Under the pieces are notes generated by a model. It worked only from the letters and a program-made list of their open reading frames with translations. It did no database searches and was not told where the DNA came from. Shown in pieces: positions 10,615 through 63,636 of a DNA stretch of 64,000 bases. How positions within the stretch are numbered: position 1 is the stretch's first letter; each line of letters starts with the position of its first letter. The position numbers were made by a program, and so were the translations under genes. This DNA comes from Felis catus (lineage: Eukaryota), in NCBI RefSeq assembly GCF_018350175.1, contig NC_058377.1:102920001-102984000 (forward strand), written 5' to 3'.

Positions 10615-11559
10615 ATGGCTGGGAGGAATGACACTGTAGTGACCGAGTTCTTCCTCACTGCGTTCCCAGAGCATCCCGAGTGGGGGCTCCCTCTCTTCCT
10701 GGTGTTTTTGAGTTTCTATCTCCTCACTCTGCTGGGGAACACGGGAATGGTCATCCTGATCCGTGTGGATGGCCGGCTGCACACCCCGATGTACTTCTTC
10801 CTTGGCCACCTTTCCTTCGTGGACATCTGCTACTCGTCCGTCACGGTCCCCCAGATGCTGGCCATGCTGCTGGAGCGTGGGGCAGTTCTGTCCTACACAC
10901 GCTGTGCCGCTCAGTTCTTCCTCTTCACCTTCTTTGCTTCCATCGACTGCTACCTCCTGGCAATCATGGCCTATGACCGCTACGTGGCCGTGTGCCGGCC
11001 CCTGCTTTATGTCACCGTCATGACCGAGAAGGCCCGCTGGGGCTTACTGGCTGCAGCTTATGCGGCTGGTTTCTCCAGTGCCTTTGTTCGGACGGTCACA
11101 GCCTTCACCCTCTCCTTCTGTGGAACCAATGAGATCGACTTTATTTTCTGTGATCTCCCTCCCCTGTTAAAGCTGACCTGTGGGGACAGCTACACCCAGG
11201 AGGTGGTCATTATTGTGTTTGCCATTTTTGTCATGCCTCTTTGTGTATTGGTGATCTTGGTGTCCTACGTGTTTATCATCGTGGCCATCATGAGGATCCG
11301 CTCTGCGGGAGGCCGGGCCAAGACCTTCTCCACGTGTGCCTCCCACCTCACGGCCGTGTCACTCTTCTTCGGCACTCTCATCTTCATGTACCTCCGAGAC
11401 AACTCGGGCCAGTCCTCGGAGGAGGACCGAGCGGTGTCAGTGCTCTACACAGTGGTGACCCCCATGCTGAACCCCTTCATCTATAGCCTGAGGAATAAGG
11501 AGGTAAAGGAGGCGGTTGTGAAAGCCCTGAGCAGGTCAAAGTCTCGTGGAAGGCCCTAG
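10615..11559 (+). CDS. OR9Q2: Olfactory receptor family 9 subfamily Q member 2, intact, 314 aa
   Basis: Full OR motif set ([46 protein letters not shown]) and N-glycosylation site NDT. Sequence matches recalled OR9Q2 (QFFLFTFFASIDCYLLAIMAYDR, GDSYTQEVVIIVFA). Splice acceptor ttcgcAG at 10597-10598. Confidence 0.95.
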   Translation: MAGRNDTVVTEFFLTAFPEHPEWGLPLFLVFLSFYLLTLLGNTGMVILIRVDGRLHTPMYFFLGHLSFVDICYSSVTVPQMLAMLLERGAVLSYTRCAAQFFLFTFFASIDCYLLAIMAYDRYVAVCRPLLYVTVMTEKARWGLLAAAYAAGFSSAFVRTVTAFTLSFCGTNEIDFIFCDLPPLLKLTCGDSYTQEVVIIVFAIFVMPLCVLVILVSYVFIIVAIMRIRSAGGRAKTFSTCASHLTAVSLFFGTLIFMYLRDNSGQSSEEDRAVSVLYTVVTPMLNPFIYSLRNKEVKEAVVKALSRSKSRGRP

Positions 11560-15680: not shown

Positions 15681-16744
15681 TTGCTGGCATGTTTTGCATT
15701 GGGTTTTATAAGCCATGTTTAGCCAATGTATGATTTTTTTTTTTCCAGTTTGTTTTTCTAGGCATTTCCCTTGCATTTGTGTTACTCACACTTAGGTGAT
15801 AGGGAATTCTGCTAATTTATTCATCAGGCCACAAGTTGGTTTTCCTCAGGTATGGCTAACACAAAAGCACTAAAATACATTAACATTCACTTGACAGTGC
15901 TTTGCACAAAATCTTTATGTATTCTAAATCTAACGACATCAGTTACTGACTAAATATTGTCTTTTCTTATCCGGTCTTACAAATCTCTTAACATTTTTTT
16001 CGTGTCAATTTCTCGCTTTGGTCTGCGAGGGCACCAAAGGCATGGGCTGTGAATTATTCATCCCTTTAGTCCCAGGGTCAGAGTCAGAGCCTGGTAAATT
16101 GATGGCTTATTGATGGCTTGCCATAGATGTTTGTTGAAATGACAGGTACAAGGATCCTTTAAGGGAATTCAAGCATCTGGGTCCAGATGTATGCCTCTCC
16201 TCCATGAAAACCTGTCAAGGTTTTTATAAAAGTTTGCGGTTCTCTATTTCCTGAATCGATTGTCTTTTGTGTCTTAAACTAAATCCTAATTCACTTTGTC
16301 GGGTAAACTCCCAACTTGCATCCAAGTCCATCCCTAGCCAAATCAGCTTCCCCATTACTCACTGAGGATGAAGCACCTTAGAAAGGATCCAGGCTCCTGG
16401 GGAGCGTCCGAGCTGGAGGTAACGGAGGACTGGCCCACATGGATGACCACCAATTCAAACCAAATCGCCTGGGTCTAAACCTGCTGGTTCTTATCCTATC
16501 ACATATAGGCTGGATGAAACCAGAATAAAGAGATAAAATCACAGATCTGCCCAATCGATGTTTAACAGAACATTCTGGAACAGAAGATTCTGGAACCAGG
16601 TTAAGCATGGTGGTGTAATAGGACAAGACATTTTATCTTAAAATAAAAAAGTATTTTTCTTCCTAAAGCAATAGTCACTGCAAAATGATAAAGCAATAAG
16701 AGAGTATTATATAAATCCCTCCATTTTATGAAACAAAATCACTA

Positions 16745-17262
16745 TTTTGGTTACAGAGTGTTGTATAACAAACCACCCCAAAATATAGGGACTTAAAACA
16801 AGGACCGTCATTTTATTGTTGTCTCTCGCAGTTCTAGGAGTTGAGGGGACACGATGGGCAGTTTTCACTTGGGGTCTCATGTGCCGACAGCCCGAGCTGA
16901 CACTGGATCAGCTGAATGTTCACTCACTCACTTTCTGCAGACTCCGAGATTCGAAGGCTGGAAAAGCTGGAGGTCTTTGGGCATCTGCCTCTGATTCTCT
17001 GTGGCTTCGCCACATGGACTCTCCGGCATGGTGGCTTCAGAGCAGAGGGACTTCTTACGGGGAAATTCAGGGCTCCAGAGGTACACATCTGGAGAAAGTG
17101 CCAGGTGGAGGCCGTACTGGCTTTTCTAAGAGTCTTGGAAATCGTGCAGCACCACTTGTGGGACACTCTATTAATCAGAGCAGCCCTAAAGCCCTCCAGG
17201 TTCAAGGAGAGGGACACTGACTCCATCTCTTGATGAAGAAGTGGCAAACTTCTTCAAGAGCG
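16745..17262 (-). mobile_element. MaLR solo LTR (MLT1F/H-like)
   Basis: gtataacaaaccacccaaaa..cttaaaacaa..cagttctagg start and gactccatctcttgatg near the end, typical of a reverse MLT1. Confidence 0.75.
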
Positions 17263-18861
17263 TGTGAGATGGAAATATTGTCGTGGCTGGCTGTTTTTGG
17301 AAAACACGATCTGAGACAACCACTCTCAATATTTTGCTGACTCTCTTCCTAGGCATCTCTTTGTGCACATGCCGTTGTACATAAATGGGCGTAATGATAA
17401 TGCTGTCGTAAAACCTTCTTTGCGTATATCAGACCAATTGTTATGTTACAGAAAAAAGAAACTGAGGTTGGTAACATGGTTTGTCACAAGTGAGTTCATT
17501 GCAGAGCCCAAGTCTCTTGATTATAAATCTAGGACTCTCTACTTGTCCCGGTAGAATAGTGAAAGCAGGGTTCTATGGTTCATGTTGGAGTTGTGGGTGG
17601 AACAGGGTGGACTTTGAGGTATTTGAGGAACAAGGACTTGGAGGCCAGTTTGGTAAGTCATATAAAAGCAAGTGGATTTTAAATTTACAATGCAAAAATC
17701 AAATGAAGCATAAAAGTTTGAGAGACATCAGAGAGAAAGGCGGGTGGCTGATTACGTATCTCCTCTTATGGAGATTGGGCTTTTATGAGTTCAGAGAAGA
17801 CGAGAAGTCTTAGATTGGGCACTGAATAAACTTTGTTTGGCCTGGAAGGTAGATTGGGGTTGGGAGCCTGGGACAGTTCCCAAAACAAGGAATTTTTTTA
17901 ATAGTGTCTACGATATACGAGGATCTATGGTTGTTGTCTCGCATACATGTCCATTTACTCACAAACAGCTTTGGGATGTTCGGATGATTACTCCAGTTTG
18001 ACAGACGAAAAAAGCAAGTTTCAATGCTTAAATAATTTCTATGGATCACGCAGGTGAATCTCAACTTCCTGAAAAGCCAGGATTTAGAACCAACTCTCTT
18101 CACGCTACAGTGCAGTTGTTAGAGGAATCAGATTAAATAGCGAATAAAAGTTTGCTCCAGAGCTGCAAATATTTTTTAAAAAGGATTTGGACACAGAAAA
18201 AGAACATGTTCTTCTGGGGAGCTACTTAAGGCAGATGTCTGAAAGACATTTCCATCAACCAGTGGGCACCCAGGTTTGCACAAATCCCAGAGCTGGAGTG
18301 GAACTCAGAGTTTATGGGGTTCAGTGATTCTTTAGCACAAGGGTCACCTGAGGGGTGTTTCCAGGCTACGAGTGCCTGATTCCTTCACTGAGTCTTGGTT
18401 AGTAGATACAGGTGGGATTTGGGAGAAAAGCAGTAAAACCTAGTTTGTAGCCTTTCTCAGCCTCAAGGAAGTCCGAGATTTGACCCTTGGTCTAATCCCT
18501 CTTGCAATGAAGTCCAGAATTTTCTAGGTGGATCCTGGATCCAAGATGCAAGACAGCCCTGCCAAAGTGGCTCTGAAGCTTCTTGGCCACTTTTATCTGT
18601 TTGTTAAAATTGGTTATGGAGGAATTTGTAATTGATGAGCAGCTTGTATTTGCATAGATGCAGCTGTACCTGAAAAGGGGTGCTAGTCACATATCTCTAC
18701 GGGGATCATCAAGAGGCAAGGCATAATGGCTAAGGAACCCCGGAGCTGAAGCCTTCCTGAACTGAGGTCGTCCACACCCAACGAGTGCTCTCTCTCATGA
18801 CCATGCACATTCCAAGTATGGAATGACTGGGATATTTAGAAGGTGTGCCTTCTAAATGAGA

Positions 18862-18940
18862 CCTCTACCCTCCTCCCTCACTCGTGCTCTCTCTCTCTCT
18901 GTCTCTCAAAAATTAATAAATGTTAAAAAATTTTTTTTTA
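18862..18940 (+). mobile_element. 5'-truncated CAN-SINE tail
   Basis: (CT)n and A tail only. TSD aaatgag(a/g)cct. Confidence 0.8.
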
Positions 18941-19036
18941 AATGAGGCCTGTATGATGCCATCGTGTGTGAGTTTTGTGGCTGTCCCGTATCCTTAAAGT
19001 TTTCTTAAAGCTTGATTCTTGGTGTATTTTGTGAGC

Positions 19037-19042
19037 TTTATT
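19037..19042 (-). terminator. First canonical AATAAA downstream of the OR1S stop codon
   Basis: Plus-strand tttatt at 19037-19042. A scan of 19043-20045 found no tttatt or tttaat, only variant hexamers (TATAAA, AGTAAA). Confidence 0.45.
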
Positions 19043-19090
19043 GCCAAGCTGAACCCAAGACCATTGCAGCTGGTTGAGGAGAGAAGTCAC

Positions 19091-19271
19091 CTCAAACTGT
19101 CCTGCTCAGACACAAGGATCAATGAACTCGTATTATTTATCGCGGTCTTATCGGTTGTCACCTTCCCCTTTGACCTCATTCTCTTCTCGTACATCTTCAT
19201 TGTCAGGGCTGTCCTGAGAATCTCACCCACAGAGGGAAAGTGGAAAGCCTTCTCCACCTGTGGCTCTCACC
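19091..19271 (+). pseudogene. 181-bp inverted partial copy of the OR1S CDS (ECL2-TM5-start of TM6)
   Basis: Reverse complement of 20282-20462 with 6 substitutions and no indels. Translates LKLSCSDTRINEL...KAFSTCGSH. Has no 5' or 3' OR sequence. Confidence 0.95.
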
Positions 19272-20045
19272 AACTAGAACTAATAACCTTGTTTTATAGA
19301 CGAGAATGTAGACTCAAGAAAGTGAATTGACATGCCTTAAGTCTCATAACTACTTTGGGGCAGAGTCAGGACTAGAACTGATGTCTTTTATAGAAATGCT
19401 CTCTGATTTGTCATTGAATGCATTTGTCCAATTATGTTTTGCACACTAGTCCCACGAACTACTTGGTGATGAGTCAGGTCATATCCGACTGAATAAGCTC
19501 ATATATGATTGAATACGTTTGAGAATTGCTGCGTACCATACTGCCTTCTTGGAGATTTATGCTATACCAAAGGCTCTAAGAAGTTGTCTAGTGAAGACGT
19601 TTACTTCACGCAGCTCAGAGTTGCCTCACATTATTTGGATGTGGGACCCTTCTATGAACATCTCACCGAATAGTAGTTTTGGCAAAACAGACTTTGAGTA
19701 AAGCTGACCTAGAGAAATCAAGATTGAATAAAGGAATTAGTAATAATTGTCTTCAAATAAACAAACAAATAAATAAATAAATAAATAAATAAAATAACTG
19801 TCTGCAAAGCTGTAAAAGGTACTACATGCACTTGTTATTGTCTAAGTTATAAATGATTTGTGCCCAAGTTTGCAGTAACATACATGAGAATCAGAATAAT
19901 GCGCTTTCCTTGTGACTTACCAACGGGGTTAAGGTCTCGTTTCCAAGACCAGAGCTATGTGGGAAAGCCCCAGCCCCTCAGAGGCGGATCTAAAACTGAA
20001 CCATCACATCTATGCCATAAACTCTGGGCAGAATCATCCATCTGG

Positions 20046-21014
20046 TTATGGGGATAAATCAGATGCCCACGGCATCAAAGGGAGGAAGATTTTCCTACTG
20101 AGGAGCTTTCTTAGGGCACCTTTCATGTCCTTGTTCCTCAGGCTATAGATGAAGGGGTTCATCATGGGCGTCACCACAGTGAATAGCACTGCACCAATCT
20201 TATCTCCGCCATCAGGGTGAGTGGTTGAGGGGAAGAAGTAAACCCCTACAATGGTCCCATAGAAGAGCAATACAACTGTCAGGTGAGAGCCACAGGTGGA
20301 GAAGGCTTTCCACTTTCCCTCTGTGGATGAGATTCTCAGGACAGCCCTGACAATGCAGATGTAGGAGAAGAGAATGAGGGCAAAGGGGAAGGTGACAACC
20401 GATAAGCCCGCGATAAATAATACGAGTTCATTGATCCTTGTGTCTGAGCAGGACAGCTTGAGCAGAGGCGCCAAGTCACAGAAGAAGTGTGGGAGAGTGT
20501 TGCTGTCACAGAAAAGCAACGGAAGGAGTAGAAGAGTGTGTATTAGGGCAACAGCATTACTGAGGACCCACGGAATGACCGCGAGCGAAATGCAGAGCCT
20601 GGGTTGCATGATGGTCATGTAGTTCAGAGGGTGGCAGATAGCCACAAAGCGGTCATAGGCCATGACGCCCAAGAGGAAATTGTCAATAACGACAAACACA
20701 ATAGAAAAGTACATTTGCGTGATGCAGTTCTCATAGGAGATGGATTGAGTCTTGGTCTGAATATTCATTAGCATCTTGGGGACTGAGGTGGATACGGAGG
20801 AAATATCAGCAAAGGATAGATTGGCAAGGAAGAAATACATGGGAGTGTGAAGGTAAGAATCCAAGCCGATGGCCAGGATGATGAGTCCATTCCCAACTAC
20901 AGTGACCAGGTACATACCCAGGAAAAGCACAAAGAGGACCTTCTGCTGCTCAGCCTGGTTGGAGAGTCCCAGAAGGAGGAACCCAGAGACGGTGGTTCGA
21001 TTTCCTTGATGCAT
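20046..21014 (-). CDS. OR1S1: Olfactory receptor 1S (co-orthologue of human OR1S1/OR1S2), 322 aa from MHQGNRT
   Basis: OR motifs LHTPMYFFL, MAYDRFVAIC, KAFSTCGSH, PMMNPFIYSLRNKDMK. The ORF track starts at a non-ATG codon (21083). The real ATG is 21014, preceded by a polypyrimidine acceptor (ttgtgttcctttctccAG) and followed by N-glycosylation site NRT. Confidence 0.93.
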   Translation of the reverse strand: MHQGNRTTVSGFLLLGLSNQAEQQKVLFVLFLGMYLVTVVGNGLIILAIGLDSYLHTPMYFFLANLSFADISSVSTSVPKMLMNIQTKTQSISYENCITQMYFSIVFVVIDNFLLGVMAYDRFVAICHPLNYMTIMQPRLCISLAVIPWVLSNAVALIHTLLLLPLLFCDSNTLPHFFCDLAPLLKLSCSDTRINELVLFIAGLSVVTFPFALILFSYICIVRAVLRISSTEGKWKAFSTCGSHLTVVLLFYGTIVGVYFFPSTTHPDGGDKIGAVLFTVVTPMMNPFIYSLRNKDMKGALRKLLSRKIFLPLMPWASDLSP

Positions 21015-21680
21015 ATTTCTGCTGATCTGGAGAAAGGAACACAAGGTCTTCACAGACCCAAAGAAAAGCCAGTGTGGTAACATTTGGTTGCAGCCGCTGG
21101 AGGGAGGTGGAGAAGAATTACTTAATAAGGAACTACGTCAGCGGTTCAGAGACTCAGGAAATGCCTTCGAAAGGAAAGTCAGAGCCACCACGATAGACAT
21201 TTCTCAATGAACACGTTTGAAACTCGAACACCACTCTGACAGTGATGGTTAGAGTGGGTTCCAAATGCAGTGAAAAGCCTGAAACTAAGGACAATGGGTG
21301 AGGTGTACTCCATATTCTAAAGATGCTGGATAGCCCTGAAGGAATTACTTAAAAATGAAGAAAATGGCCCTGACACCTTTCCTAGCGTTCGCTTTCATTT
21401 TGAAATTGAAGAAGACAGAACTGGGAAGAGTCCCTGAGGGAAGAGATTGGGAAGGAGAACCAAGCGAGCTTACTGAAATATACTGCAGTGTGGGTGCTCC
21501 TGCCCACTCACGTTAGGGGGAGGATGCAGAAAAGCTACTCTTGGGGAACGTGTACAAGAAGGGAGACCAGAAGTTCACTTCATTCGTGGATGGATGTTAG
21601 GTGAACGGAGAAAATTTAGGGGACTTGTAAGAACCTGAAGACTTGTGTTTGTGGGCCACTTCTAAAGATGGGAGGCTCCC

Positions 21681-31175: not shown

Positions 31176-32246
31176 CCCCAAGTTAATTTTCTATGATTTG
31201 TGACCTTAAATAAAAACAAAATGAGGCATGGAAACACAGTTGGAAACTTTCCTGATGTTTGCATTCTCGACAATGTCTCGCACAGTGTGCACATGTAATT
31301 GATTCATTCTGTCCTGATGTGGCTTGGCCTGCATAGGTTGATAAGCAGCTTGCCAACCAGAGTTCTGTTCCTTCCCTCCAGCATTTAGCTGGAAGCAAAG
31401 GCATTTCTCATACATTGTGAAATCCATGACTGGTTCCAGAATAATTAACACTTTGTAGTCCTTCTCCTTACCCCCATGTGACATCAGCGTGAAAACAATT
31501 AAAAGCGTGGAAAGCAGTCATTTTGAAGAGAAGAAGTAACTGAGACAAAAATACGCCAGTTTAGGAAGAATAAGAAAGGTGGATTGTGCTGTGATAGGAG
31601 TTTACAGAAACTGTCATTTATCTGCTTACAAGAGTAACACAGTCTCACTTTACAAAACTTGGAAACATGCATGAATGAATGAAGAAGAAACGATTACCCA
31701 TAATTCTACAAAGCCCAGATAAGAACCACTAACTTTTTGGTGTGTGTCTATTCATTATTCTGCACATGTGTGTTTACCAAACTGGGCTACCGTTATACAT
31801 ACAGGTTTGTTTCTGGCTCTTACCACTTAGTGTTCTGATGAGAAACATTGCCCCTTATTGTTTAATATTGATTGAAATGCATTGTAAGTATGTTATATTC
31901 ATGTGTCCAACACTGGAAGTGAGATTTTAATGCCTTTTCGTTTTATAAAGGTAAGGAACAGGCTTCTAGTTCCACTTACGTTAGCCTTAATTATTTGACA
32001 TTATGATTTTAGAACGAGAATTACTGAATTAGTAAAAAGAAGCATTTTCAGGCCTTCGGTAAACTTAGCCCTATGGCATTTAGAAACGTTGTACCAAGTC
32101 CTTAGGTGAGTTTTAGTATCCCCTGGCTGACACTTACTTCTTGGGGTCACTAGCTGAAGTCAGCCTAATGGGCAACATCCAGTCCCTTCCCTGACAGGTC
32201 GTGTCCGCCCCCAACTGTTCCGGAGCAAGTAATTTCTGTTAAGAAC

Positions 32247-32615
32247 TGTCCTTGGATCCCTCTTTGCTTCATTTTTCCTCAGGAAGGCTGGGCAGCATGA
32301 AGCCAGCTGTGCAAGGCACCGAGGAGCGAATTCTACAGGGTTTGCCTGTGGTCAGGGAGCAGGTGCAGGAGGACGGAACCACCATGGGGCTGCAGGACGT
32401 GCCGCGGTGGGAGGACCAGTGGCGCCACCTGCTGAGCGGGTCTTCGACCAGTAGCCGTTAAGAAGGCACCGGAAGAGGTGAGGAAGGAGAGTAAAGCTGC
32501 AGGAAAGCCAACAAGGGCACGGAGGGCTTGTACCCGCAGTGCTGGCGTCCTGCTCAGTCAATGGATGCCAATTCCTGCCCGCTTCCTGGCACAATGAAGG
32601 ACGATGAAGGCAACC
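32247..32615 (-). pseudogene. Degraded OR10W-like pseudogene relic (TM4 to C-tail, with frameshifts and deletions)
   Basis: Minus strand contains aag acc cgc tca gca ggt gg- cgc cac tgg [15-nt deletion] tcc tcc cac, versus OR10W1 aag atc cac tcg gca gct ggc cgc cac cgg gcc ttc tcc acc tgc tcc tcc cac. LQPHGGSVLLHLLP resembles [14 protein letters not shown], and LRKNEAK resembles LRNREMK. The motifs occur in the correct order. Confidence 0.75.
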
Positions 32616-33132
32616 CATTGGGATGTATGGAAGGAAAGAAATTGATGCATTAGATACGCTTCTGTTTGCCACACGTTCGTATCTAAAACAACAATACAGT
32701 GTATTTCTCTTAGTAAGGTCTATGTCTGTAGGAACACATCTAACTGAAGGCGTCGTTCACAGGATACCTCAGTATCATCGCCTTCTCAGGAGGCAGGGCG
32801 TCTGTGATGCTTTAGTCCCAGCATGCATGGTGGGGGGGCCGGGGGGGGGGGGCGGGGAGGTCCTGACGAAGCAATTGCCCCGACTGAGCTCTGAACCTTT
32901 AAAGTAGGGCCCGCAGACTAGCTCTCCTGCATTGAGGTTTTTGTCCACATTTTCCAAATCTTATTCAAGCACTTCAAGAAAATGAGTACAGACTGTGGAC
33001 GTGGGGCCAACATGGCAAAAAGAAACGTCAACTGCAAAGTGTGGGGGAGGTAAGTATGAGAATTCCATATTCGTTGTTCAGAGTCCATTATCACGGCCAC
33101 TGACAGACACCCACCCCCAGGCCCCTTAAGCC

Positions 33133-34092
33133 TCAACGGGTGTCCGAGGCTGCTTTACTGGCGATGGCATTCCTCAGGGCACCTTTGACATCCTTGTTCC
33201 TAAGGGTGTAAATCAGCGGGTTGAGTAAGGGGGTGACGAAGGTGTAGACCAAGGCGATTTGGCGGTCCTCGTCCTCTGAGGTGCTGGAGCGGGGACGCAG
33301 GTAGACCAGGCTGCAACAGCCATACTGCAGCAGGACCACGGTGAGGTGCGACGAGCAAGTGGAGAAGGCCCGGCGGCGGCCCTCGGCGGAGCGGATGCGC
33401 AGGATGGCGGAGGCGATGAACACGTAGGACACACAGATAAGCAGGAAGGGGACGGTCAGCACCAGGATGCCCACCACGTAGAGCACGGCCTGGTGCACGC
33501 GGATGTCGGCGCAGGCCAGCCGCAGGACGGGAGGCACGTCGCACAGGAAGTGGTTGATTTCCCGGCGGTGCCCGCAGAAGGGCAAGGTGAAGATCAAGCA
33601 GGCGAGCTGCAGGGAGAGGAGGAGGGCCAGGCCCAGGGCGCACAGCACCATCCGGACGCACAGCTTCTGGGTCATGATGAGGGTGTAGCGCAGCGGGTGG
33701 CAGATGGCCACGTAGCGATCGTATGCCATGATTGCCAAGAGGAAGCAGTCAGCGCTGCCAAGGGCGACGAAAAAGAACATTTGGGCCCCACAGCCAGCCA
33801 GCGGAATGGGTTTCCGGGCGCCCCAAAGGTTGGCAAGCATCAGAGGCACCACAACAGAGGTGTAGCAGATTTCCAGGAAAGACAGGTTGCACAGGAAGAA
33901 GTACATGGGGGTGTGCAGCGAGCTGTGTGTGCGCACCGCCCAGACGATGGCCGCGTTGCCACAAAGGATCATCAAGTAGAGCAGGAGGAAGAGGAGGAAG
34001 AGGAGGGCCTGCAATTCGGGGACGGTGGTGAACGCGCGGAACACGAACTCGGTGGGGCCGGACTGGTTGAGGACGGGGCTCCTGGCAAACAT
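33133..34092 (-). CDS. OR10Q1: Olfactory receptor 10Q1, intact, 319 aa from MFARSPVLNQS
   Basis: OR motifs present. The C-terminal third (QYGCCSLVYLRPRSSTSEDED..KAASD) matches recalled human OR10Q1. Acceptor cttgcAG at 34099-34098 lies just before the ATG, so the 26 upstream in-frame codons are probably intronic. Confidence 0.93.
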   Translation of the reverse strand: MFARSPVLNQSGPTEFVFRAFTTVPELQALLFLLFLLLYLMILCGNAAIVWAVRTHSSLHTPMYFFLCNLSFLEICYTSVVVPLMLANLWGARKPIPLAGCGAQMFFFVALGSADCFLLAIMAYDRYVAICHPLRYTLIMTQKLCVRMVLCALGLALLLSLQLACLIFTLPFCGHRREINHFLCDVPPVLRLACADIRVHQAVLYVVGILVLTVPFLLICVSYVFIASAILRIRSAEGRRRAFSTCSSHLTVVLLQYGCCSLVYLRPRSSTSEDEDRQIALVYTFVTPLLNPLIYTLRNKDVKGALRNAIASKAASDTR

Positions 34093-35602
34093 GTCCCCTG
34101 CAAGCGAGCGACAGAAAGGGCCGGATCTTCCTTCGCTGAGTTGTTTTATTGCGGGAAGAAAAGCAGACATTTTAAATTTGATTTCTGATTTGGCATTTAG
34201 TATCCAGTTTCCAAATTCAGTGCTTGGGATGAATTCACACTAGAGGCTACGGTATATGTTTTCCCAAGGAATCTTCAAAAATGGGATAGATAGTAATCTG
34301 TAGAGTTCCTTGTGCCAAAGACTTATAGATATTCTTTGGTGAAATGTCTTTTTTTTTTTTTTTTTTTTACACTGGTATTTTACATCTAATTTGACAAGGG
34401 CTAAATCTTTGCTTGCATTGCATCGAACAGTTGTGCGGTTGTAGATGTTTTTTACATTAGACAAACGGATGTGGTTTTTTTGGTAAACATTCTTAGTGAA
34501 ATGTAACAACCAGAGGCATTCACAAATCCTAAGTGTAGGGCTTGAATTTTTTGCACTGTAAATACACTAGTATAGCCACTATCAAGAGGGACAAATTGAA
34601 CAATTCCAGAAACTTACACCCATCTCTCCTGTCTCCTGACTTTCTACCTTACAAAGGTAAACCGCCCTTTCAACTTTGGTCACTGCAGATCAGTTTACGT
34701 TTCAATTCCTACGTGTGATGATAAAGCGTGTACTGTCTTGTGACGGGCTCCGACGTTGTGTCTGCAAAGTTATTTCTGCTGTTCCATGTAACATTTGTTA
34801 TCCTTTCTGTTGTTTTAGAGTCTTCCATTTTACGGCTGTGCTGCGATTTATTCTAGAGTTCACTTTTCATCCCATTATTTTGGCTCAGATAAAACTGGGC
34901 CAACACCTTTTATTCCAGTCCTTTCTGAGATACACTTTTTATATATTTCCTCTCGTTTCAATTTTTTTTTTCTAAATTTCCAGGCATGAACCTAAACTTT
35001 AGGGCTAGGACAGATTCACCTAGACGGGGACTGTAGGGAGTAAGGAAAAATGAAGGTAGAACTGCTAGACATAAGAAAAGGCAATAAGGAAACTAAAAAT
35101 GCAGTAGCAGAATTGAAATAGACATTAGAACACGCAGGCGAGTAAGAAAAGAACTTTAAAAGCATCTAGGAAGGGAAAAGTACGTATAAATTAAGCACCT
35201 TCGGCTACTACAACTTGCCCAAGAGACAATAAAGTCATATCTGTAGGTTTAAGAAAAACAAACTGGTGTCAAAGAATTCTGTACCCACGCTTTAGTGATT
35301 TAGGTTCAAAAGCAACAGATAGACTCTCTCAGATTTACAAGGGCTTAGGAAGTATGTCGTTCTAAATACAATTGAAATAATTTCTCAACAAAGACTCTGT
35401 GCTCCTGGGTGATTAATCAGGATACATAATCCAGGACTGGGGAAGTTGTAATGGAAAAACTCGATGTGAAAAATCAAATAGTAAATATATATATTTAACA
35501 CTAAATGGTTAATACAAATATTATTCAAAGAAAAAAAATTCCCCGAATAGTGCTTGAAAACATACATAATATAAAATGCAAACATTAAAATAATTCCTCA
35601 CA

Positions 35603-42927: not shown

Positions 42928-43908
42928 GAGGAATTTCCCCAATGGTTTCCCCTCAAACTGAACCCAACTAGAGAAAAGTATTTGAGGAAAATTATTTTCT
43001 GAATTGACGAACTCAGCCAGTTGCCAATGGGCAACTCTTCTGTGTGGCCACTGTAGACATTTACTATCCGAGAATTCCATGAGGGTCTCCTCATTCCTTT
43101 CCTGTACCCGCCAGGGAACTTTCTAACGTTGTGTTCCAGACAGTTTCCCAGTGAGCATTGTTGAATGCCCACGTTCATTTCAGCCTGAACTCACGGCGTA
43201 TGTGTGATGCACTAATTCAGCACTAGCCTAGGCATCTGGGGATCTAAAGTATAGTTACAGCTCTGCCACGGGGCTCCTTCATCTTCGGCAAATACTGAAG
43301 CTCTAACATGGGCTCCTCATGTGGGGTGCGAGGTCATTGATTAATAGACATCATGGATCCTTTCAGCTCTAAACTTCTATGAACAGTGGGTGCCTTTTTC
43401 TTGAGAAGCAGAAAATTTATGAAGGATTTTCCCATAATCATTCCTTCTGGTCTATGGCCTCATTTCCTCTTATCTTACTTGTTTTTGTTTCTTGATTAAC
43501 TTTTTTCTCTGCTGATACTTTCTTAGTCATTAAAAGGTGGTGTTTTGTTTTGTTTTGTTTTGTAATTATAGTTACGTTTCCAACTCTGCCTTGCCATGTT
43601 TTTCTTATTTGTTTCTCCCTTCCCACCTCCCTCCAGACTTCATGGACTTAAAATCACATACCTTCTCATCATTGCTGCCATTTATTTTTAGCCACGTTCG
43701 GCCTCCTTGTCTCATGTCCATTATCAACAATACATTTTTAGTCAATATGTAACAAATATTTATTGAACTCCTGTTGTGAGGTAGGCCCTTCTGCCAACTC
43801 TCCGGATACTTCAGTGTACAAAATAGACAACTATTTTGTCCTCACAGAGATTGTGTTCTTGGAGAGGGGAGAACAGATCGCAAGCAATAAATAAGAATAC
43901 GCACATTT

Positions 43909-44112
43909 GGGGCGCCCAGGTGGCTCAGTTGGTTGAGCGTCCGACTTCGGCTCAGGTCACGATCTCACGGTTGGTGGGTTCCAGCCCCACGGCGGGCTCT
44001 GTGCTGGCAGCTCAGAGCCTGGATGGAGCCTGCTTCGGATTCTGTGTCTTCCTCTCTCTCTGCCCTCCCCTGCTGATGTTCTGTCTCTCTCTCAAAAATA
44101 AATAACCATTAG
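43909..44112 (+). mobile_element. CAN-SINE, left arm of an inverted pair
   Basis: Preceded by aagaatacgcacattt. Confidence 0.95.
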
Positions 44113-44127
44113 AAAAATACGCACGCT

Positions 44128-44335
44128 AAATTTTTCTTAATGTTTATTTATTTTAGAGAGAAACAGAGTGCGGGCAGGGGAGAGGCAGAGAGGGAGGGAG
44201 ACACAGAATCTGAAGCAGGCTCCAGGCTCTGAGCTGTCAGCACAGAGCTCGACACGAGGCTCCAACCCACGAACCGTGAGATCATGACCTGAGCTGATGT
44301 CGGAGGCTTAGCAGACTGAGCCACCCGGGCGCCCC
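44128..44335 (-). mobile_element. CAN-SINE, right arm of the inverted pair
   Basis: Followed by aagaatacgcacattt. Confidence 0.95.
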
Positions 44336-44867
44336 AAGAATACGCACATTTCATAACATGCCAGAGGGGTGGGTGCTATAGAGAAGAAGCAGAACGGGGT
44401 AAGGGTAATGGGAGAGAGAGCAGGAGAGAGTGATGTTCTAGGCAAGACGGGTGCAGAGGGCTATTCTGCGTTCCAGGAAGGCTTCTGCAAGGCAGTGAAC
44501 AGATCTACGAAATGATGTGCCAGCCACAGGAAGGGAAAAAAAAGGCTTAGGGCAGAGGCAACTTCACGTGGAAAGGTCTTCTCTGAAGCCGAAATAAGCA
44601 AATCAGATTTTTCCGTAAAGGTCCAAGGTATCTAAAGTCTATGTGAGTGAAGACAGCTTGCCTTTTATATTCGTGGCAATGGCCAAGTAAATCTGTGCTC
44701 GTTCTTATGACTGAACGGGTGGGTAAGTGCATATGGGGGCTGTACTCAGACCCATTTTCCTGTCTGTCCCACACAGATACATTTATTTGTTCAGATGACC
44801 TCATTCCCACAAACATCTTTTACATCCTTGCCATAGTTTCCACATAATTGTAGGTTATAAACGTTTT

Positions 44868-62411: not shown

Positions 62412-63371
62412 TCAGAGAGCTTCACCTGTTCCTTTGCTACTGATGGCCTTTTTCAGGGCACCTTTGACATCCTTGTTCCTAAGGGTGTAAATCAGCGGGT
62501 TGAGTAGGGGGGTGATGAAGGTGTAGACTAGGGCAAACTGGCGGTCCTCATCCACCGACGAGCCCGATTGGGGACGCAAGTAGACCAAGGCACAGAAGCC
62601 ATACTGCAGCAGGACCACGGTGAGGTGCGACGAGCAGGTGGAGAAGGCCCGGCGGCGGCCCTCGGCGGAGCGGATGCGCAGGATGGCGGAGGCGATGAAC
62701 ACGTAGGACACACAGATAAGCAGGAAGGGGACGGTCAGCACCAGGATGCCCACCACGTAGAGCACGGCCTGGTGCACGCGGATGTCGGCGCAGGCCAGCC
62801 GCAGGACGGGAGGCACGTCGCACAGGAAGTGGTTGATTTCCCGGCGGTGCCCGCAGAAGGGCAAGGTGAAGATCAAGCAGGCGAGCTGCAGGGAGAGGAG
62901 GAGGGCCAGGCCCAGGGCGCACAGCACCATCCGGACGCACAGCTTCTGGGTCATGATGAGGGTGTAGCGCAGCGGGTGGCAGATGGCCACGTAGCGATCG
63001 TATGCCATGATTGCCAAGAGGAAGCAGTCAGCGCTGCCAAGGGCGACGAAAAAGAACATTTGGGCCCCACAGCCAGCCAGCGGAATGGGTTTCCGGGCGC
63101 CCCAAAGGTTGGCAAGCATCAGAGGCACCACAACAGAGGTGTAGCAGATTTCTACGAAAGACAGGTTGCACAGGAAGAAGTACATGGGGGTGTGCAGCGA
63201 GCTGTGTGTGCGCACCGCCCAGACGATGGCCGCGTTGCCACAAAGGATCATCAAGTAGAGCAGGAGGAAGAGGAGGAAGAGGAGGGCCTGCAATTCGGGG
63301 ACGGTGGTGAACGCGCGGAACACGAACTCGGTGGGGCCGGACTGGTTGAGGACGGGGCTCCTGGCAAACAT
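62412..63371 (-). CDS. Second OR10Q paralogue (OR10Q1-like, possibly the OR10Q2 orthologue), intact, 319 aa
   Basis: Collinear with 33133-34092 at a constant offset of 29279 nt. Identical except L72V, eight TM6-ECL3-TM7 residues and nine C-tail residues. Confidence 0.92.
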   Translation of the reverse strand: MFARSPVLNQSGPTEFVFRAFTTVPELQALLFLLFLLLYLMILCGNAAIVWAVRTHSSLHTPMYFFLCNLSFVEICYTSVVVPLMLANLWGARKPIPLAGCGAQMFFFVALGSADCFLLAIMAYDRYVAICHPLRYTLIMTQKLCVRMVLCALGLALLLSLQLACLIFTLPFCGHRREINHFLCDVPPVLRLACADIRVHQAVLYVVGILVLTVPFLLICVSYVFIASAILRIRSAEGRRRAFSTCSSHLTVVLLQYGFCALVYLRPQSGSSVDEDRQFALVYTFITPLLNPLIYTLRNKDVKGALKKAISSKGTGEAL

Positions 63372-63636
63372 GTCCCCTGCAAGAGAGCGACAGAAAGGGC
63401 CGGATCTTCCTTCGCTGAGTTGTCTTATTGTCCGAGTTAGAATAAAGGCACGTTTCGTGCAGAAAAAAATAACTCAATTCCTCAAATCATCTAGTTTGTT
63501 AAAAAAAAACCAAACGAAAGCGAAGTGTTGGGTGTTGTGTGATATAAATATCGTGAGAAGTAAAACAGTAAAACCCTGCTGTGTCTAAATAATTATTCCA
63601 AGTGTTGTTTTATAAAGAACAGAAGTTTCCAATATA

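Follow-up and report, generated by a model that had tools for sequence, protein, structure and literature searches.

Can a gene carry, in its own messenger RNA, an antisense copy of part of its coding sequence (CDS), and if it can, how would such a copy arise and what would it do? The question is raised by an olfactory receptor (OR) gene of the domestic cat (Felis catus) and by a 181-nt inverted fragment of it that lies downstream of its stop codon. Both belong to a window of 64,000 nucleotides, which is the whole stretch of DNA analysed here. The original prediction, drawn from the letters of the sequence, was that the copy may fall inside the 3'UTR of the gene and thereby produce a fold-back mRNA, amounting either to a built-in cis-antisense control or to a hidden inactivation of an apparently intact receptor. 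We regard as likely a plainer explanation of the whole, in which an isolated inverted duplication of template-switch-type origin left a copy that has been drifting and that is probably present in some of the transcripts.

The host gene and its inverted copy

The elements of the locus are the following, in positions of the window:
20046..21014, minus strand: intact OR1S1-like olfactory receptor CDS, an uninterrupted single-exon open reading frame (ORF) of 322 amino acids plus stop
20282..20462, minus strand: source arm, nucleotides 553-733 of the CDS (codons 185-245)
19272..20045, minus strand: spacer and putative proximal 3'UTR, 774 nt of unique sequence without AATAAA or ATTAAA
19091..19271, plus strand: inverted 181-nt copy with six differences from its source

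Judged by its domain and by its ORF and relatives alike, the host gene is an olfactory receptor of the OR1S subfamily, which agrees with the intact OR1S coding sequence of the original prediction. The Pfam 7tm_4 profile matches the protein over the whole seven-helix domain (E = 3.5e-57; 194.8 bits against a cut-off of 27), and residues 33-308 align to profile positions 3-280 of 280. The closest relatives are olfactory receptor 1S1-like proteins from 13 other felid species (98-100% identity), followed by those of mustelids, dog, and rhinoceros (88-90%), and the top matches in non-felid mammals are named 1S1-like or 1S2-like at 80-91% identity. There is an in-frame ATG further upstream at 21083 that is probably not the true start of the CDS. 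A pyrimidine tract followed by CAG stands immediately 5' of the ATG of the gene, and this layout is common in receptor coding exons.

The window is an OR cluster, with other receptor ORFs at 10615, 33133, 50207, and 62412. The TM7 region of the OR1S1-like gene (20128-20195) is 90% identical over 69 nt to that of the receptor at 10615-11559 (11433-11501), a member of an unrelated subfamily; the identity far exceeds that of the remainder of both genes and reflects either strong motif conservation or a small conversion tract. Two of the other receptor ORFs, at 62412-63371 and 33133-34170 (minus strand), are 29 kb apart and match at 97% over approximately the CDS only, which suggests either a duplication whose flanks have diverged or gene conversion limited to the CDS. 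Opposite these GC-rich receptor genes are antisense ORFs of 280 aa (33346-34188, plus strand) and 290 aa (62568-63440, plus strand), whose translations are rich in glycine, glutamate, and alanine; the GC content is 0.56 in 32001-34000. These antisense frames are most likely by-products of composition and not genes.

The copy at 19091-19271 is the reverse complement of 20282-20462 at 175 of 181 positions. A repeat search and our own independent comparison both recovered this inverted repeat exactly where the original prediction had placed it. Within the 64-kb window the copy matches its source arm with E = 2e-83 (blastn), and apart from it the rest of the window has just weak paralogue similarity to the CDS of the gene. 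The mismatched positions (copy/gene) are 19096/20457, 19146/20407, 19173/20380, 19189/20364, 19197/20356, and 19226/20327. When the alignment is extended without gaps, identity drops to random at once on both sides, and the borders of the copy are sharp. The arms are spaced by 1010 nt of unique sequence. The end of the stop codon (20046) is separated by 774 nt from the nearer border of the copy (19271), in line with the distance of 775 nt first given, and an (AAAT)n microsatellite occupies 19755-19793 of this spacer. The source arm spans the end of extracellular loop 2, TM5, intracellular loop 3, and the start of TM6, and the 7tm_4 profile aligns to the copy at profile positions 149-222 only. 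Because the copy reads in the receptor sense on the plus strand, it would be antisense within any transcript of the OR1S1-like gene.

By these comparisons the inverted duplication of an OR1S1-like coding fragment is a real genomic feature. The competing thought that a chimeric or fold-back read entered the consensus of the assembly has, in our estimate, hardly any chance of being right, as the arms differ at six positions, have 1010 nt of unique sequence between them, and end in sharp edges; a fold-back artefact would yield an identical palindrome beginning at the turning point.

Origin and age of the copy

The copy stands isolated in its surroundings. Its flanks (300-800 nt each), compared with the flanks of the gene or with the whole CDS in local DNA alignments, score at shuffle level, and 51-99% of shuffles equal or exceed the real sequence (p = 0.5-0.7). 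At the protein level, searches of both strands of 16000-20045 with an OR1S profile HMM and with tblastn found no significant receptor homology beyond the 181 nt. A 103-aa ORF at 19019-19327 crosses both junctions, and its matches in protein databases are receptor fragments of unrelated species only. Rfam gave no RNA family match in 17500-21500. Inspection of the edges of the copy revealed neither a poly(A) tract or A-run nor a target-site duplication, and L1-mediated retroposition of a receptor fragment was ruled out for want of the tail and of the target-site duplication. An origin as a SINE or other transposon was likewise ruled out, since the copy belongs to no repeat family within the window, its flanks are unique there, and transposon hallmarks are absent.

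An older history may also be conceived, in which the copy is the relic of an inverted receptor pseudogene, with a 181-nt patch that the neighbouring gene renewed through gene conversion. Such conversion, confined to coding sequence, may indeed occur in this cluster, where 62442-63430 and 33163-34151 match at 97% over only about 990 nt and the match stops at the flanks at megablast sensitivity. Moreover, the profile alignment extends weakly into the left flank of the copy ('CVS..V.P'), an extension that has no support at the DNA level. Gene conversion nevertheless requires flanking homology, and none is detectable beside the copy; with the flanks at shuffle level in DNA and without significant similarity in protein, we consider this history very improbable.

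With retroposition and transposition excluded and a pseudogene patch unlikely, the remaining explanation is a templated insertion in inverted orientation. The fragment was copied in reverse complement from a nearby place on the same chromosome (175/181 at a spacing of 1010 nt), as a template switch would do, and an inverted duplication of the template-switch type, in all likelihood a neutral one, is the most likely reading of the sequence. In such a scenario, a growing strand would jump, through an error of replication or repair, to the other strand at a distance of about 1 kb, copy 181 nt, and return, in an event of the FoSTeS/MMBIR type. The inverted fragment would then have landed 774 bp downstream of the stop codon of the OR1S1-like gene, where it would have drifted unconstrained while the gene remained under purifying selection.

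According to the template-switch model, a nascent strand copies a nearby complementary strand and then returns (four-point model; Loytynoja and Goldman, 2017, PMC5453318). The copy behind the OR1S1-like gene resembles the products of template switching, FoSTeS, and MMBIR in being a nearby reverse-complement insert without transposon hallmarks. Four-point template switches, however, mostly involve tens of bases and a single fork (PMC5453318), whereas here 181 nt were taken from about 1 kb away, and by its size the copy would fit the FoSTeS/MMBIR class more than that of the short template switches. It offers a clean case, open to dating, of an inverted templated duplication of middle size (181 nt taken over a distance of about 1 kb); studies usually deal with short template switches or with rearrangements in the kilobase range, and this size class falls between the two.

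The direction of the changes can be read from the orthologues. Four of the six differences are non-synonymous (G203V, A212D, C220F, and S229P) and the other two are synonymous. At all four residues the gene agrees with 13 felid orthologues and with two mustelids, dingo, and rhinoceros, and therefore the non-synonymous changes arose in the copy. The copy in addition carries A202, which is the state in most felids, whereas V or L stands at this residue in mustelids, dog, and rhinoceros; the duplication should thus postdate the split from the caniforms. The event most likely belongs to the cat (feliform) lineage and dates back millions of years. Taking 4-6 substitutions per 181 sites and assumed rates of 1-2.2e-9 per site per year, the age would be roughly 10-33 My, with Poisson limits of about 3-72 My. 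Transversions account for four of the six differences, three of them G>T/C>A (p of about 0.1 under a 2:1 transition bias), which hints that some of the changes may date from the copying itself, if the synthesis was error-prone; the age of the copy would then be overestimated.

The gene and its copy have since fared differently. The host gene is nearly invariant among 14 felid species, and the cat protein differs at one of 322 residues from that of the clouded leopard (Neofelis) and from that of Geoffroy's cat (Leopardus). The 60 codons of the source arm are almost invariant in felids, whereas the same 60 codons have undergone four replacements in the copy, which indicates that the gene is under purifying selection and the copy is not. 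All six mismatches between the arms are uncompensated, at least four of them lie on the copy side, and the pattern fits neutral drift; there is no sign in these substitutions that complementarity has been kept by selection.

As for repeats in the vicinity, the nearest one is an approximately 80-nt truncated piece of a SINE at 18862-18942, about 150 nt beyond the copy. This piece (window positions 18862-18960) is flanked on the minus strand by near-identical 10-mers, GCCTCATTTA before it and GTCTCATTTA after it, which look like a target-site duplication. Elsewhere in the window, 43907-44337 is 81% identical to its own reverse complement across 431 nt and apparently consists of two head-to-head SINE copies, and many other pairs of SINEs occur at 75-93%.

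Transcript ends and the place of the copy

Whether the copy enters the mature mRNA depends on where transcripts of the gene end and how they are spliced. The signals relevant to this, all on the minus strand, are listed from the stop codon onward:
19915..19922: donor-like TTG/GTAAGT with the break at 19921/19920, in the putative 3'UTR 125 nt after the stop; a sequence pattern only
19605-19600: AGTAAA variant hexamer, before the copy
19561-19556: CATAAA variant hexamer, before the copy
19392-19387 and 19298-19293: TATAAA variant hexamers, before the copy
19070..19086: acceptor-like pyrimidine tract plus CAG directly past the copy, from a motif scan; a sequence pattern only
19037..19042: first canonical AATAAA, 1004 nt downstream of the stop and 49 nt beyond the copy
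16812..16817: distal AATAAA, candidate distal poly(A) site, 3229 nt after the stop

Scanning of the 774 nt between the stop codon and the copy gave neither AATAAA nor ATTAAA on the strand of the gene. This absence, and the position of the first AATAAA at 19042-19037, are as the original prediction had them, and the variant hexamers it named as caveats (AGTAAA near 19600, TATAAA near 19390 and 19295), together with the donor at 19921/19920, are all present. The lack of a canonical signal in a stretch of this length is unremarkable, since composition-matched shuffles lead one to expect 1.09 and have zero in 32% of cases. The two canonical signals past the copy are of different quality: the region downstream of the one at 19042-19037 is GU-poor, and the one at 16812-16817 is followed by a strong GU/U-rich stretch.

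What is known of OR transcripts in mouse provides a measure for these distances. Two studies give median 3'UTR lengths of 773 nt and 1576 nt for mouse OR genes, and single 3'UTRs are about 1.0-1.2 kb long. Alternative polyadenylation affects 77% of the genes, with distal isoforms of about 2 kb and proximal isoforms with medians of 0.6-0.8 kb. Approximately two thirds of the 3' ends lie at a canonical signal and one third do not, and introns within the 3'UTR are known from only 13 mouse Olfr genes. A transcript must exceed 955 nt after the stop to include the copy, and by eye count of the first 131 or so table rows, about 85% of mouse OR genes have an isoform of such length, and in about 40% even the shortest isoform exceeds it. 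The best cluster in the genus of the mouse, at 80% identity to the cat protein, is that of Olfr1496, the family 1 subfamily S member 1 of Mus musculus. Its 3'UTR is a single one of 1075 nt in one data set, and in another there are two, of 1254 nt (75%) and 3344 nt (25%). The canonical signals of the cat gene, at 1004 and 3229 nt after the stop, may be compared with these values of 1075-1254 and 3344 nt.

The copy is thus located in the zone normally covered by OR 3'UTRs, and so it is probably included in at least part of the transcripts. The mouse data make its inclusion plausible, and on balance we lean toward a substantial share of the gene's transcripts carrying it. The points against inclusion, namely the weak region downstream of the AATAAA at 19042, the variant hexamers before the copy, and the putative pair of donor and acceptor, give room to a different outcome, in which the copy is a silent scar of the genome and is kept out of the mature mRNA by early ends (at AGTAAA 19605, CATAAA 19561, or TATAAA 19392 or 19298) or by splicing from 19920 to about 19070. 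The TATAAA at 19298 has a GU-rich stretch downstream. The roughly one third of mouse OR 3' ends that use no canonical signal, and the medians of 0.6-0.8 kb for proximal isoforms, also speak for early ends. On the side of splicing, donor-like and acceptor-like motifs are found on either side of the copy, and as sequence patterns they would define an 851-nt 3'UTR intron whose removal would excise it. Against the silent scar, the isoforms beyond 955 nt in about 85% of mouse OR genes (the same eye count of about 131 rows) and the shortest Olfr1496 isoform, which is already 1075 nt long, speak against early ends, and the restriction of 3'UTR introns to just 13 mouse Olfr genes speaks against the splicing route. 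We would give the silent scar a minor, though real, chance. A junction at these motifs would lie more than 55 nt after the stop, and by this pattern the spliced transcript would be a candidate for nonsense-mediated decay.

The predicted duplex and its possible consequences

If the copy is included, the transcript would pair its TM5-TM6 coding region with the copy as a 181-bp duplex. The in silico fold that the original prediction proposed as a check was run on RNA from 19020-20500, and the complete 181-bp stem was obtained in both the minimum-energy and the centroid structures; the two arms alone have a predicted energy of -356 kcal/mol. The predicted structure is a long near-perfect duplex like those formed by 3'UTR inverted repeats of the ADAR type. 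In it each of the 37 adenosines in the coding arm has a U as its partner, and A-to-I conversion would be non-synonymous at 26 of these 37 positions. ADAR acts promiscuously on intramolecular duplexes of such length and near-perfect pairing, and these can also bind Staufen, PKR, or Dicer. Because translating ribosomes would unwind the coding arm once the mRNA is in the cytoplasm, it is in the nucleus that the duplex would matter.

A fold-back mRNA at this locus is a plausible prediction. In its consequential form, most transcripts would extend across the copy as far as the AATAAA at 19042 or further, and the duplex would act in cis as a brake or a diversifier; while in the nucleus it would be hyper-edited from A to I, with recoding of TM5-TM6, or the mRNA would be retained there or poorly translated. 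Consistent with this form, no canonical signal precedes the copy and one follows it by 49 nt, the main 3'UTR of mouse Olfr1496 measures 1075-1254 nt, and the full duplex is predicted with every adenosine of the coding arm paired and with 26 of 37 changes recoding. The known promiscuity of ADAR on long duplexes points the same way. Yet the AATAAA at 19042 has a GU-poor downstream region, and the six mismatches, four of which change amino acids in the copy, are compatible with neutral drift, with no selection on pairing to be seen. The single difference in 322 residues from Neofelis and Leopardus is hard to square with heavy random recoding or silencing, and a full-text literature search found no paper on ADAR editing of OR mRNAs. 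Nor did the literature searched include any RNA or transcriptome study of cat olfactory mucosa. Taking both sides together, we think it rather unlikely that the consequential form is correct. We look with similar reserve on a related proposal, that the copy is a newborn exonic editing-complementary sequence, by which a large share of the transcripts folds back in cat olfactory neurons and is hyper-edited or damped, and that this is tolerated under purifying selection.

The strongest claims of the original prediction fare poorly in the comparison among felids. Provided that the copy has the age implied by its six changes, the receptor stayed functional alongside it, which argues against a hidden inactivation; this is disfavoured by a gene that is nearly invariant in 14 felids next to a copy with four amino-acid changes. 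A built-in cis-antisense control is without support, since the copy bears no sign of kept complementarity. In both of these stronger versions, inactivation and evolved control, the fold-back idea is not supported by the substitution pattern, and from the conservation of the gene, any effect of the copy would seem to be mild. Should the copy be co-transcribed even so, the locus would be a natural experiment on a long duplex between CDS and 3'UTR in neurons that rely on one receptor mRNA, and would show the birth of an editing-complementary sequence in one step.

Several known RNA systems are akin to the predicted arrangement. Inverted pairs of SINE or Alu elements in 3'UTRs, which are associated with ADAR hyper-editing, nuclear retention, and Staufen binding, likewise have two near-identical arms of 180-300 nt, which in the cat gene too would share a single transcript and pair into a long intramolecular duplex. 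In the cat gene, however, one arm is the gene's own CDS, so that editing would recode and translating ribosomes must open the duplex. Recoding sites served by editing-complementary sequences, such as the Q/R site of GluA2 (with an intronic complement) and Kv1.1 (an exonic hairpin in an intronless gene), also have a complement to the CDS on the same pre-mRNA, and Kv1.1 shares with the OR1S1-like gene a single coding exon. Their structures are short, imperfect, and deeply conserved, and are edited in a site-specific manner, whereas the OR1S1-like duplex would be long, near-perfect, and apparently drifting, and would give promiscuous editing. Finally, young microRNA loci of plants and the hpRNAs of Drosophila similarly consist of an inverted duplication of a gene fragment that is complementary to its parent. 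Both arms of those loci lie outside the target and act in trans via small RNAs, whereas in the OR1S1-like case a single arm adjoins the parent gene and is possibly on the same RNA.
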